Source: Perkinsus chesapeaki ATCC PRA-425 (lineage: Eukaryota; Protista; Perkinsozoa). Taken from it: a stretch of 49,410 nucleotides of DNA. The notes below the pieces were generated by a model that made no database searches, was not told the origin of the DNA, and saw only the letters and a list, made by a program, of their open reading frames with translations. Made by a program: the position numbers and the translations under genes. This document shows positions 10,447 through 28,847 of this stretch, piece after piece (the stretch's first letter is position 1; each line of letters opens with the position of its first letter). The DNA lies in contig JAAPAO010000229.1 in NCBI GenBank assembly GCA_013115145.1, forward strand, positions 1-49,410, given 5' to 3'.

Positions 10447-13400
10447 TTAGTACACCTCAGGGCAGTAACGGTCATTATCAGCAAGGTCTTCGAAAATCTC
10501 CTTGGCCTTGTCCATGGAACAGTTCTCACCCTTAGCAATAGCACGATAGATGGCGCTCTTGATATCATTCTCAACCTGGCCAGCCTGTCCGCAAAGATAG
10601 AAGTAACCACCCTTCTTGATCAGATCCTCGTAAACACGAGCACTGTTCTCATCAATCTTGTTCTGGACATAGACCTTCTCCTTCTGATCACGAGAGAATG
10701 CGGGGTGGAGCTCAGTGATAGCGCCCTCCTTAGCGTAACCCTCGAGTTCGTCGTGGAAGATGTAATCCTTATCGTGATGACGGCAACCATAGAAGAGCCA
10801 CATGGGACCAGTCTCAATGCCTTGACGCTTCATCCAAGCGCGCTCTTGAGAGAAGGCACGGAATGGAGCAAGACCAGTACCAAGACCAGCCATGATCATG
10901 GGAGTCATTGGGCTCTCAGGGAACTTGAAGCTACCGGAAGTAACAGTGGAAGTAACCTTGTGACCGGGAACGATACGCTGGATGTAGTCAGTAGCGGTAC
11001 CAGTCCTCTTAACACCAGAAGGAGTAGTCCAGTTCACAACGACAACAGCAAGCTCAATGGCCTTAGGGCCAACGAACCTTGGAGAACTGGCGATGGAGTA
11101 AAGCCTAGGCTTAGTGCAAGGAACAAGGCTGATCAACTGATCAAGAGAAGGATGAGCACTTGTGTACTTGTTGAGAACATCAGCGAATGTAACAGTCTCA
11201 TTGGCAAGCTTGGTATAAAGCTCACGTCCCTTGGTGTCATCGGGGTTACCAATGGCAGAAAGTTCCTCCTTCTCCTTAGGATCCTGGGCGAACTTAGACA
11301 AAGACTTGTAGAAGGCTCTGTTAGGACGACCGAAGATATCCAAGGATTCCTCGAACACCTGAGAGATGGTACGAGGACGAAGAGCAGCAGCGCGCTTGCG
11401 GGCGTCGACGTTCTCAGCTACAGGGGTGATCTGGACCATCTCCTTGGGGTTGAGGCCGTAGGACTGAAGGAAAGCACCGACTCTACCGGCTTCGTTCATG
11501 GGGTGAATGTTGAGAACATCACCGAGAAGATAAGGAAGATCCTGACCATCCTCGAGCTCGAAACGCAAGTGACGGATATCTCTCTCGTAGTCGGAAGGAG
11601 TCAGACGATCGTTCTTTTTCAAGCCGAGCTGGATAGTTTGAGGAGGCATGATCCTCTCATAAGGAGCAACCACGGTCTCATCAGAATCAAGCTCACGGAC
11701 CTCGAATAAGGAATCAGGGACGGAACCATCATCAACGGGCTCAGGGGCCTTCACAGCCTTCCAGTAGCTCGGCATCCAATCCTCGAAAGCAGTCTCATAC
11801 TTATCATCATCCTGATCGTTACCAAGACCAACCGAGATAGTCCTCTGACCGCCCAATTCAGCAAGAAGCTCATCAATGCTCTTACCGGCAGTGCAGAAGT
11901 GATGATAACTGGAATCACCCAAGGCAAAGACACCGTACTGAACACCATCCAGGAGATGAGCATTCTGTGTGTCCTTGACGGCAGACTGCAATTGTGAAGT
12001 GAAATCCAGAGCTGTTCTGGGAGTTTCACCCTCACCGGTAGTAGAGCAAAGCACCATGAGGTTCTTGTTCTCCGGGAGCTCGTTAACATCCATCTCATCA
12101 CATTGCATGACCTTAACGGCATAACCACGCTGGCGAGCCAATTCGGCAACACGATAGGAGAGTGCCTCGGCAGTACCAGTCTCAGTACCGTACAAGAGAG
12201 TCAGTGGCACACCATCGGAGATGTTCTCTTGACCCTCGGAGGCCCACCTCTGATACTTGCTGTAACGCTCGTGGACCCAATCGGTAAGCTGGGACATGTA
12301 CTTGTTGTAGAGATCGGCATCACGCTTCTTCAAGGCACCGAAACGCATTTCGTTCTTAATAACGGCGTCCATGCTCTGAGTGAGCCTCTTAGTATCAAGA
12401 ACGAAGGGGTTCTTGCCCAACTTCTTCAACATGGGGTTATAACGATACAACGGGAAGTAGCCAGAGGCAGCAACAGTGGCCTGATGCTGCATAGTATGGC
12501 TCATGCCATCAAGATTCTTATGCTCAATGCAAGGGGCATAAGCGATGACAAGAGAGCATCCATCATAAGCTTCGGCCTCGGAGAAAGCCTTCAAAGTCTG
12601 CTGGTAGTTAGCACCCATGGAGACACCGGCAACATATACGGTACCATAGTCCATAGCCATCTCACCAAGATTCTTCTTCTCGACGTCGTGACCGAGGGTA
12701 GCAAACTTGGCAACAGCACCAAGGGGAGTGGCCTTAGACTTTTGACCTCCAGTGTTGGAGTAAGCTTCAGTATCCAAGACCAAAACGTTCAAATCCTGAC
12801 CAGAGGCAAGGACGTGATCGAGTCCACCATAGCCAATATCGTAACTCCAACCATCACCACCAATGATCCAGTTAGAGATCTTAGGAAGCAAGTCGGACAT
12901 ATCAAGGATGTCCTGAATAGCAGGGTCCTTGCTGGCCTCGGCCTTAAGAAGAGGAGGAAGTGACTTCGAAAGAGCCTCACAGATGGCGGGGTTCCTGAAG
13001 TTCTCAACCCACTCGTTGAGCTGAGTGTACAACTCAGGAGACAATGGGCTATCTTTTCCTTCAAGAAGTACCTCTTGGACACGAGCCTTAAGAGCCTTAC
13101 GGCGGACAGCGGTGGTCACAGCCATACCCATACCGTACTCGGCGGCATCTTCGAAAAGACTGTTAGCCCAGGCTGGACCGGTACCATCGGGTCTTGAAGT
13201 ATAAGGAGTAGAACCATAAGGAGCACCCCAGATACTAGAGCAACCAGTGGCATTAGCGATCATCATACGATCACCGAACATTTGAGTAAGAAGGCGAACA
13301 TAAGGAGTCTCACCACATCCAGCGCAGGCACCGTGGAACTCGAGGAGAGGTTGATGGAACTGACTGCCCTTAAGGGTAGTGGTATCAAACCTGGAAGAAC

Positions 13401-26200: not shown

Positions 26201-28847
26201 CCTCGTGGGTTTCAGCCAAAGAGACCATTCGGAGAGCATCATCAGGGCAAGCGTTGACGCAGACCTCGCAACCAGTACAGTCGTAGGGAGACACCTGAAT
26301 CCTGTAGTGAAGACCGGCAACCTCAGCACCACCCTTGGCCTTGCGAGAGTCAAAGGTAGGAGGTTGACGATCAACTTCGTCCTGTGAGAGGAGGAAAGGC
26401 CTGATGACTGCATGTGGGCAGGCCATTGCGCAGGTATTGCAATGAGTGCACTTATCCATGTCCACCTCCGGAACCTCGAGAGCGACCCCACGCTTTTCGT
26501 ACTTAGCCGTACCCAAAGGATTCACACCACCAAGAAGATCTTCCTCGGTAAAGGAGCTCACAGGGAGAGAGTCACCTCGCAGCAAAGCGATCGGACCTTG
26601 AATGTTCTTAGAGAAGGCATCGTCGAGAGTGGCGTACTTTTTCTCAGTGGCGATCGGCTCGTCGGGAAGCTTGGCCCATTCGGCCGGGACCTTGATCTCG
26701 TTGATGGCACCGAGAGCCTTATCAATCATTTCGTAGTTCTTCTGGACAACAGCTTCACCACGATGACCATAACTCTTCCTGATAGTGTTCTTATAAAGCT
26801 GAATACTCTCCTCATAGTTCATCACATTTGACAGCTTGAAGAAAGCAGACTGCATGACGACGTTGATCATACGGCCCATACCGCATTCCTCAGCAACCTT
26901 GAAGGCATCAACATTGAAGACCTTAGCGTTCTTCTGAGCTAGTATGCGCCTTAGTGCTATGGGTACATGAGCGTTCCAGTCCTCAACGGTATGATAAGGG
27001 GAGTTCAAACAGAATGTTCCACCAGGCTTCAGATGCTCGCCCATACGGTACATCTCCAAATAGGTCGGGTTATGGCAACCAATATAGTCGGCATGATTCA
27101 CCGCATAATACGACTTGATAGGGTTAGGAGAAAAACGGAGATGGGACATAGTCAAGCCACCGGCCTTCTGTGATCCATAAGCGAAATAAGCCTGGACGAA
27201 GCGGTCAGTGTTATCACCAATGATCTTAGTGGCGTTCTTGTTAGCACCGACAGTACCATCAGAACCGAAACCGAAAATAAGGCATTCGACTGTACCATCG
27301 TGACCAAGATCAACTTCCTTTCCAAGAGGTAGGGATAGATTAGTGACATCATCCTCGATACCCACGGTAAACCTATCCTTGGGGTTCTTGGAATAAAGAT
27401 TATCAGTAATAGCCACCACACAGCTCGGAGTGAACTCTTTTTGCCCAAGACCCCAACGGCCACCGATAACCTTGATGTTGCGACCAGAGCCCTGAATGGT
27501 ACTCGAGACGTCCAAGAAGAGGGGTTCGCCATGGGAACCATGCTCTTTAGTACGATCAAGTACTGCTACCTTCTTAACGCTCTTTGGTAGAGAGGCCAAG
27601 AAATCCTCAGATGACCATGGTCTATACAGTCTGGGCTTCAACAGACCGACCTTTCGTCCAGAAGAGTGGATATATGGCAGAGTCTCCTCAGCGACACTAG
27701 CGCCTGCACCAAGGATGACGATAGCTGAGTCGGCATCTTGAGGGCCGACCCACTGGAATAGTTCATAGTTCCGGCCAGTAACCGCTTCAACGCGAGCAAA
27801 CTCTTCTTTGACTATACCGGGTACGTTTTCATAGAATTTATTGGAAGCCTCGATCTGCTGGAAGTAGACGTCGGGGTTCTGATTAGTTCCTCGGATATGA
27901 GGGTGAAGAGGGTTGAGAGCTCGGGAACGGTGCTCGTAGAGAGCCTTAGTGTCAATAAGCTTCCTCATTTCATTATAGGGTAAAGTGTCGATCTTCTCAA
28001 TAGTGTGAGAAAGTCGAAAGCCGTCAAAAAAATGGACAAACGGAACGCGGGCTCTTAAAGTTGCCAGATGAGCTACCAACGCCATATCGTGACATTCTTG
28101 AACCTGAAGCAAATCATGAATCGAATCCAGCATGCGAAGGTGAGACTTTGGGGGAGCGACAACATACGACACAGGAAAGGCAACAGAGAGAAGCAGCGAA
28201 TGGACCTACGCTATTGGCGTTGATCATGGCGAACCCAGTTTGTCGAGCAGCCATAACATCTTGATGATCACCGAAGATAGATAAAGCATGTCCAGCAAGG
28301 GCACGGGCAGCAACATGCATTACACAGGGAAGAAGCTCACCGGCGATCTTATACCTGACACGGTTATCTCCAGTCTAGCAGCCCGTTTAAAACAACCATC
28401 AAGGACTCTTACATATTGGGAATCATCAATAACAAACCTTGGCTTGCTGTAAAGGTGGTGGCAAGAGAACCAGCCGTTAGGGCACCATGGAGGGCCCCGG
28501 CAGCACCGGCCTCTGACTGCATTTGGGTTATTTTAACAACATCACCGAAGGCATTCTTGACTCCGAGCTCCGACCATTGCTCTGAGAGCTCGGCAATGGG
28601 GGAAGACGGTGTAATTGGGAAAATAAATGCAGTGTCGGTCATAGCGTACGAGACATGGGTGACTCCAGTGCAACCATCCACAGTTTGCCATTGCCCACCA
28701 CCTAAAACGATAGAGATATGGAATGACGGCAATAACGGAACATCTGTTACTCGGAGACGCCTTCGCAAAGTTCCGTTTAAGAATCCCAGCAATTGCCCGA
28801 GTACCAGCTGTTGTACTGAGCTTCGAACCGTTGGTAGAGATCAACAT
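23208..28847 (-). CDS. PNO: Pyruvate:NADP+ oxidoreductase copy 3, four exons (28751-28847, 28413-28701, 28210-28354, 23208-28103)
   Basis: Removing GT-AG introns 28702-28750, 28355-28412 and 28104-28209 restores a frame collinear with copies 1 and 2 (ASP|SGGQWQ, IPN|MYKI, INANS|VQECHD). All PFOR, flavodoxin and FNR motifs are present. Ends RYCPELY*. Confidence 0.96.

Follow-up and report, generated by a model that had tools for sequence, protein, structure and literature searches.

A stretch of 49,410 nucleotides from the genome of the clam parasite Perkinsus chesapeaki ATCC PRA-425 (contig JAAPAO010000229.1, positions 1 to 49,410 of the forward strand; hereafter the window) carries three genes for PNO, the enzyme in which PFOR is fused to a cytochrome-P450-reductase-like module. 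The genes, here labelled c1, c2 and c3, are co-oriented on the minus strand in the array order c3-c2-c1. With a probability of about 0.85, as read from the sequence, the region represents a conserved tandem array of three functional paralogous PNO genes. The array belongs to an enzyme family that is known and has been recorded in Perkinsus before, and is not a new kind of system; what is new here is the gradient of introns across the copies, the parallel and segment-specific gene conversion between two of them, the variable dosage of c1 and a set of corrections to public annotations.

Gene models were derived from the list of open reading frames (ORFs), their translations and local joining of exons, with splicing read from the sequence (Table 1). 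The ORFs and translations confirm the three full-length, co-oriented genes between outer coordinates 10447 and 28847 that an earlier note on this DNA had described, and the spacers, which it put at about 0.8 kb, measure 861 and 821 bp. Its statement that no copy contains a frameshift or internal stop holds for c1 and for the messenger RNAs; it does not hold for the genomic sequence of c2, which has one intron, or of c3, which has three. The first Met of c1 is also present in P. marinus P0001 and in P. olseni. The long frame of c2 lacks a start codon and its intron contains two in-frame stops; the spliced product has 1829 amino acids. The frame of c3 shifts three times within the first 750 nt, at its three introns, and the spliced product of 1808 amino acids is letter-for-letter the public protein P0003 (FOL47_003960). 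Once the exons are joined locally at the GT-AG sites, every copy has an open frame. The genes flanking the array, unlike the PNO copies, are split into many short exons.

All three products contain the Pfam domains POR_N, PFOR_II, POR, EKR, Fer4, Flavodoxin_1, FAD_binding_1 and NAD_binding_1, and the last three, which make up the reductase, share an ORF or exon with the PFOR part. TPP_enzyme_C rises above threshold only in c2 and c3; c1 keeps the GDGW and YSNTG motifs of the thiamine diphosphate (TPP) site. In a phmmer search of the PDB, residues 44-1231 match the PFOR structures 6CIN and 1B0P (E = 0), and residues 1243-1828 match structures of NADPH-cytochrome P450 reductase (E ~1e-80). Motifs were aligned across c1-c3, the P. 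marinus orthologues, Euglena PNO and, for the PFOR part only, Moorella PFOR. Every motif named by the earlier note, for the pyruvate and TPP residues, the Fe-S cysteines and the FMN, FAD and NADP sites, proved intact in each copy: PITP, QSEAG, HVAAR and YSNTG; the twelve cysteines for three [4Fe-4S] clusters, in two CxxCxxCxxxCP motifs and four further positions (CAGCGE, TGCSS/TGCTS, APCIEH); and the motifs for FMN, FAD (RLYSIASS) and NADPH (GLGTGLAPF). The Mg-TPP motif GDGW is intact in each copy as well. The same motifs are kept in all the other aligned proteins, for Moorella within the PFOR part. A word-index protein search with c1 and the long ORFs of c2 and c3 as queries (the joined c2 protein entering local scripts only) recovered full-length fused relatives, including the characterised PNO of Euglena gracilis (P0046), and the UniRef label of the Perkinsus proteins is pyruvate dehydrogenase (NADP+). 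Judged by domains and motifs, the three genes are genuine PNOs, PFOR fused to a cytochrome-P450-reductase-like module.

Each product comprises a short N-terminal extension, a complete PFOR of the homodimeric type that holds the TPP site and three [4Fe-4S] clusters, and, fused to it, a reductase module for FMN, FAD and NADPH. Family membership suggests the conversion of pyruvate, CoA and NADP+ to acetyl-CoA, CO2 and NADPH, with electrons expected to pass from TPP through the three clusters to FMN, FAD and finally NADP+. The extensions ahead of the PFOR core are 33-45 residues long, basic and hydroxylated, have no acidic residues and carry an R-x-F|A motif, conserved as RHF|AG in c1 and c2 and as RNF|AK in c3. 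They are putative mitochondrial presequences, compatible with import into the matrix.

The copies are 84% identical at the nucleotide level between c1 and c2, and 73% between c3 and either of the others; synonymous divergence (dS) is 0.6 for c1/c2 and exceeds 1.5, reaching 1.7, for the pairs that involve c3. A maximum-likelihood tree resolves three orthogroups with support of 98-100, each containing P. chesapeaki, P. olseni and P. marinus, and places c3 as sister to c1 and c2 together. Because every orthogroup contains all three species, both duplications must be older than the divergence of the species; c3 branched off before c1 and c2 parted. The sister group of the Perkinsus clade consists of PNOs from environmental eukaryotes, the nearest outgroups, each with a single intronless gene (L006:6008-11467 and L007:10001-15436) at 61-64% identity; their contigs are compact and gene-dense and carry kinesin, Spo11 and RRN3 genes. 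The triplication proposed by the earlier note is therefore not borne out as an event of P. chesapeaki, since tree and conserved synteny place the array before the split of the three species. Its description of the copies as clearly diverged applies to c3 and fails for c1 and c2, which are partly homogenised by recurrent gene conversion.

Gene order and intron structure point the same way in all three species. The P. marinus proteins XP_002772895/6 (P0001, P0002) and XP_002765111 (P0127) are direct orthologues of c1, c2 and c3 with 87-89% amino acid identity, and their genes agree with those of P. chesapeaki in order and orientation, in the genes that flank them and in the 0/1/3 distribution of introns. 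They are distributed over two scaffolds. GG681386 (L002:5729-23151) has an N-terminal PNO fragment at an assembly gap, followed by c2, c1 and the same downstream genes, and GG686929 (L003:3398-19001; L009:984-12191) has c3, a remnant of c2 consisting of its last 91 codons and 3' untranslated region (3'UTR), and two further genes of c1 type, X and P0123. X, P0123 and P0001 are only 87-89% identical to one another in nucleotide sequence, and the species has two PNO arrays, or halves of arrays, that are not allelic to each other. The extra c1-type genes, the c2 remnant and the larger spacers of the second scaffold set this species apart from P. chesapeaki. In P. olseni, one contig (L004) carries a folate-carrier-like gene and then c3, c2 and c1, and another (L010:1-21827, JABANP010000111) carries c3, c2, c1a and c1b in tandem, followed by the downstream genes of the window; c1a and c1b are 96.9% identical. 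Copies of c1 type thus number one in the P. chesapeaki contig, two in P. olseni and three in P. marinus. A protein search with the N-terminal domain for further P. chesapeaki copies returned only a cluster of P. olseni fragments, which also contained P. marinus fragments.

All three copies are under strong purifying selection, and none of the three lineages is decaying. The ratio of non-synonymous to synonymous divergence (dN/dS) is 0.10-0.15 when paralogues are compared and 0.02-0.07 when the orthologues of any one copy are, which supports the retention of all three copies by selection. Orthologues of c1 and c2 have diverged less at synonymous sites than those of c3, in line with their stronger codon bias. 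Substitutions fixed across the species are 119 for c3, 28 for c1 and 18 for c2, and those specific to c1 and c2 fall almost entirely within the PFOR half.

c1 and c2 resemble each other unevenly, as a mosaic: a total of 1.3 kb in four tracts is 97.4% identical, against 80.1% in the remainder. The main tract, in the FAD-binding domain, has 11 differences in 633 nt and includes an identical run of 325 nt, where 2000 permutations of the variable sites gave a maximum of 76; taken together, c1/c2 runs of 325, 272 and 205 nt compare with permutation maxima of 84-107, and the longest identical runs between orthologues reach only 40-41 nt. Tracts shared by c1 and c2 are 98-100% identical, against 82-88% for orthologues in the same places. 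In P. marinus and in P. olseni, too, c1 and c2 match each other at 96-100% in the same segments, chiefly the FAD-binding domain (c1 residues ~1390-1630) with patches near residues 550-610 and 850-910; comparison between species gives only 82-88% there. When a tree is built from the FAD-domain segment, c1 and c2 cluster within each species, and in a tree of a control segment they cluster by orthogroup. Conversion between c1 and c2 is therefore recurrent, independent in each lineage and specific to segments, and c3 takes no part in it. We observed that identical runs of c3 with c1 or c2 extend to 92 nt, where permutations gave at most 43; an old conversion or very strong constraint on the segment could account for this. 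Around the junction of PFOR and reductase (c1 residues ~1150-1270), c1 and c2 are 69-78% identical, against 81-91% between orthologues, and segments kept distinct in this manner are candidates for a maintained functional difference.

Introns number three, one and none in c3, c2 and c1, and all lie within the first ~750 nt. The c2 intron and intron 1 of c3 share both phase and position, inside the Ser codon that precedes GGQWQ, where c1 is uninterrupted. The 0/1/3 pattern recurs, with unchanged intron sites, in the orthologues of P. marinus and P. olseni; P0002 of P. marinus and P0126 of P. olseni have an intron at the c2 position. On this tree topology, the simplest course is that the shared intron already existed when the first duplication took place and that c1 lost it; the direction of intron change is nevertheless uncertain, because the environmental sister lineages have intronless PNO. 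Introns 2 and 3 of c3 may have been lost in the ancestor of c1 and c2 or gained in c3. The restriction of all introns to the 5' end fits a loss mediated by reverse transcripts.

The spacers and the region upstream of c3 show no detectable similarity to one another, so that the duplicated unit has become untraceable beyond the coding sequence. Conserved blocks are nonetheless present near individual copies. Within the spacer between c2 and c1 lie a block of c2 3'UTR (~16567-16795) and, upstream of c1, one of 65 nt (16068-16132); P. olseni keeps both. P. chesapeaki and P. marinus aligned only in the 3'UTR block, and the block upstream of c1 was seen for P. chesapeaki with P. olseni and for P. 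marinus with P. olseni. Short blocks just upstream of the c2 start codon (22387-22417 and 22505-22540) are likewise conserved in P. olseni; the blocks upstream of c2, which differ from those of c1, were seen for the same two species pairs. Unalignable spacers with copy-specific conserved blocks fit a regulatory sub-functionalisation, as far as this can be read from sequence and above all for c3. The effective number of codons is 38, 40 and 49 for c1, c2 and c3 of P. chesapeaki, near 39-40 for c1 and c2 and 49-51 for c3 in P. marinus, and 39 for c2 against 49 for c3 in P. olseni. The stronger codon bias of c1 and c2 suggests their higher expression. A Logan fragment (P0128, L005) considered as a proxy for transcripts still has its introns and matches the genomic DNA of P. 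marinus at 97% identity, and is thus uninformative on expression. These properties lead us to propose that c1 and c2, with their strong codon bias, partial homogenisation and variable c1 number, probably supply the bulk of the activity as a matter of dosage, and that c3, with weaker codon bias and its own presequence and upstream region, is probably a separately regulated isoenzyme.

Several other accounts of the locus have to be weighed. An assembly artefact, in which merged haplotypes or a mis-joined repeat of a polyploid draft simulate three copies where fewer true genes exist, was a concern of the earlier note and draws on the fragmented state of Perkinsus drafts, which hold many small PNO fragments on tiny contigs. 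A nucleotide identity of 73-84% and dS of 0.6-1.7, however, lie far beyond allelic differences, the copies differ in intron content, and each has an orthologue in the independent P. olseni and P. marinus assemblies in the same order and among the same flanking genes; this account is already effectively refuted, and we give it almost no weight. It is quite improbable, too, that c1 is a processed retrogene, a recycled complementary DNA (cDNA) of the dinoflagellate type inserted beside its parent. Such an origin would explain why c1 lacks the intron common to c2 and c3, and why the retained introns all lie at the 5' end, a classic signature of reverse-transcript-mediated loss; Perkinsus is also known to trans-splice its messenger RNAs (PMC2868825). 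Yet no relic of a spliced-leader-like sequence was found upstream of c1, c2 or c3 (a weak test, as the event would be old), nor any A-run or poly(A) relic downstream of the c1 stop. Partial conversion by cDNA accounts equally well for the loss of the intron, and the intronless sister lineages leave the direction of change uncertain.

The remaining alternatives concern the reason for keeping three genes. Pure dosage amplification, with interchangeable copies kept only for the amount of enzyme, agrees with the varying number of c1-type genes, the partial homogenisation of c1 and c2 and the identity of catalytic motifs across copies. We consider it rather unlikely, since three distinct orthogroups have persisted from before the species split with copy-specific substitutions fixed across species, c1 and c2 differ more than orthologues do in segments such as the PFOR-reductase junction, and the copies are set apart by codon bias, unrelated spacers and conserved upstream blocks of their own. 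A specialisation by oxygen level or life stage, with copies serving trophozoites in oxygenated tissue, anoxic hypnospores or parasites in hosts with closed valves, is plausible as an idea and may be held as a tentative possibility. In anaerobic thioglycollate medium, trophozoites of Perkinsus grow into enlarged hypnospores, and in Euglena PNO works in the anaerobic fermentation that yields wax esters; the diverged yet copy-specific and conserved regulatory regions and the distinct codon bias and presequence of c3 also speak for it. Against it, our literature search found no report of oxygen-dependent expression of PNO in Perkinsus, and the loss of mitochondrial pyruvate dehydrogenase (PDH) in the ancestor of dinoflagellates and apicomplexans, with PNO present in Perkinsus (PMC3879968), offers a constitutive role that needs no hypoxia. 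Because of this loss, PNO may be a constitutive, high-flux source of acetyl-CoA rather than, or besides, a hypoxia enzyme, an equally good physiological reading. One might go further and picture a modular set of isoenzymes that replaced PDH in the oxidation of mitochondrial pyruvate once that complex was lost. Selection would hold the PFOR halves of c1 and c2 apart, their fixed differences being concentrated in domains I and VI and near the PFOR-reductase junction, and the reductase halves would be homogenised continually in every species; c3 would be a separately regulated isoenzyme tied to one life stage or oxygen level, and lineage-specific duplication would tune the dosage of c1. This is speculative and, taken as a whole, unlikely. 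Some observations weigh against our own reading of a conserved array of three functional paralogues. The draft P. olseni assembly contains frameshifts in c3 and c1a, which may be sequencing errors or real decay in that strain; a near-identical recent duplicate of c1, comparable to c1a and c1b of P. olseni, may be collapsed in the P. chesapeaki assembly; and codon bias, read here without a genome-wide background, is an indirect proxy of expression.

Among characterised enzymes, the mitochondrial PNO of Euglena gracilis is likewise a single-chain fusion of PFOR with a reductase of the cytochrome P450 type, with 45% identity over 98% of the query, all cofactor motifs in common and an N-terminal extension of its own. 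It differs in its C-terminal aromatic residue, which is Trp in Euglena and Tyr (PEVY/PELY) in Perkinsus; the Perkinsus genes form a three-gene tandem array with two members exchanging by conversion. PNOs of Cryptosporidium and dinoflagellates (e.g. P0034, P0036 and P0047) are versions of this alveolate fusion enzyme and align along their full length at 44-47% identity, but are farther from Perkinsus than the environmental-eukaryote proteins P0004 and P0007 (61-64%). The homodimeric PFORs of bacteria (Moorella thermoacetica, 6CIN; Desulfovibrio africanus, 1B0P) are 51-53% identical to the PFOR half and share all catalytic and cluster motifs; they have no fused reductase module and pass electrons to ferredoxin or flavodoxin, not to NADP+. 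Copies of PNO in P. marinus are mentioned in the literature (PMC3879968), as are PNO transcripts of that species (PMC4779609); our literature search turned up no description of the array as such, of its introns or of the gene conversion within it.

Table 1. Coordinates in the window of the three PNO genes, their spacers and the c1/c2 conversion tracts.
Feature	Position	Strand	Remarks
c1 (PNO copy 1)	10447..15939	-	intronless coding sequence, single ORF, 1830 aa, stop included
c2-to-c1 spacer	15940..16800	-	861 bp
c2 exon 2	16801..22169	-	stop included
c2 intron	22170..22265	-	96 nt, GT-AG, phase 1, within Ser codon right before GGQWQ
c2 exon 1	22266..22386	-	121 nt, presequence-like N-terminus
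c3-to-c2 spacer	22387..23207	-	821 bp
c3 exon 4	23208..28103	-	stop included
c3 intron 3	28104..28209	-	106 nt, GT-AG, phase 0; same position in P. marinus P0127 and P. olseni
c3 exon 3	28210..28354	-	
c3 intron 2	28355..28412	-	58 nt, GT-AG, phase 2
c3 exon 2	28413..28701	-	
c3 intron 1	28702..28750	-	49 nt, GT-AG, phase 1; codon position that of c2 intron
c3 exon 1	28751..28847	-	presequence-like N-terminus
Main conversion tract	c1 11040..11673; c2 partner 17394..18027	-	FAD-binding domain, aa 1423-1634
Second tract, reductase module	c1 10752..10995; c2 partner 17106-17349	-	c1 aa 1649-1730
Tract in PFOR part	c1 13204..13435; c2 partner 19555-19786	-	c1 aa 835-912
Tract in PFOR domain III	c1 14101..14337; c2 partner 20455-20691	-	c1 aa 535-613

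Public models of several of these genes depart from the structures given here. The model of c1, FOL47_003958 (P0124, 2716 aa; window 6205-15927, minus strand), begins at the second Met, skips the stop of c1 and joins the gene, minus its last residues, to exons of a downstream unknown gene and of a mitochondrial HSP70-like gene; it is chimeric, as its parts are three separate genes in P. marinus. Two public models of P. olseni, of 3458 and 3595 aa, each merge two genes.

Outside the array, an SLC19/folate-carrier-like gene (window ~29463-30716, plus strand) stands head-to-head with c3. The pairing is kept in P. olseni (L004:857-2506), and in P. marinus (L002) an SLC19-like gene also lies upstream of the array, adjoining the N-terminal PNO fragment. 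The SLC19 family includes thiamine transporters and PFOR needs thiamine diphosphate; a functional link is purely conjectural. Farther to the right, positions 34500-49410 display a strongly negative GC skew (-0.15 to -0.32) over 15 kb and contain multi-exon genes on the minus strand, including UBA/UCH-like and class II aminoacyl-tRNA synthetase genes; no tandem repeats were found in this skewed flank.

These results leave the definition of PNO unchanged. The locus offers a clear natural case of concerted evolution that is confined to particular segments and recurs in three species, and of intron retention biased to the 5' end; the draft annotations that merge neighbouring genes (models of 2716, 3458 and 3595 aa) need correcting. 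To our knowledge, PNO is not part of the canonical metabolism of the molluscan hosts. Genome editing exists for P. marinus (PMC8062965). With the PDH complex lost (PMC3879968), the source of mitochondrial acetyl-CoA in myzozoans, which comprise apicomplexans, dinoflagellates and perkinsids, is a real question, and PNO is a serious candidate for a major route, because strong selection maintains three to five PNO genes in Perkinsus, two of them with high codon bias.

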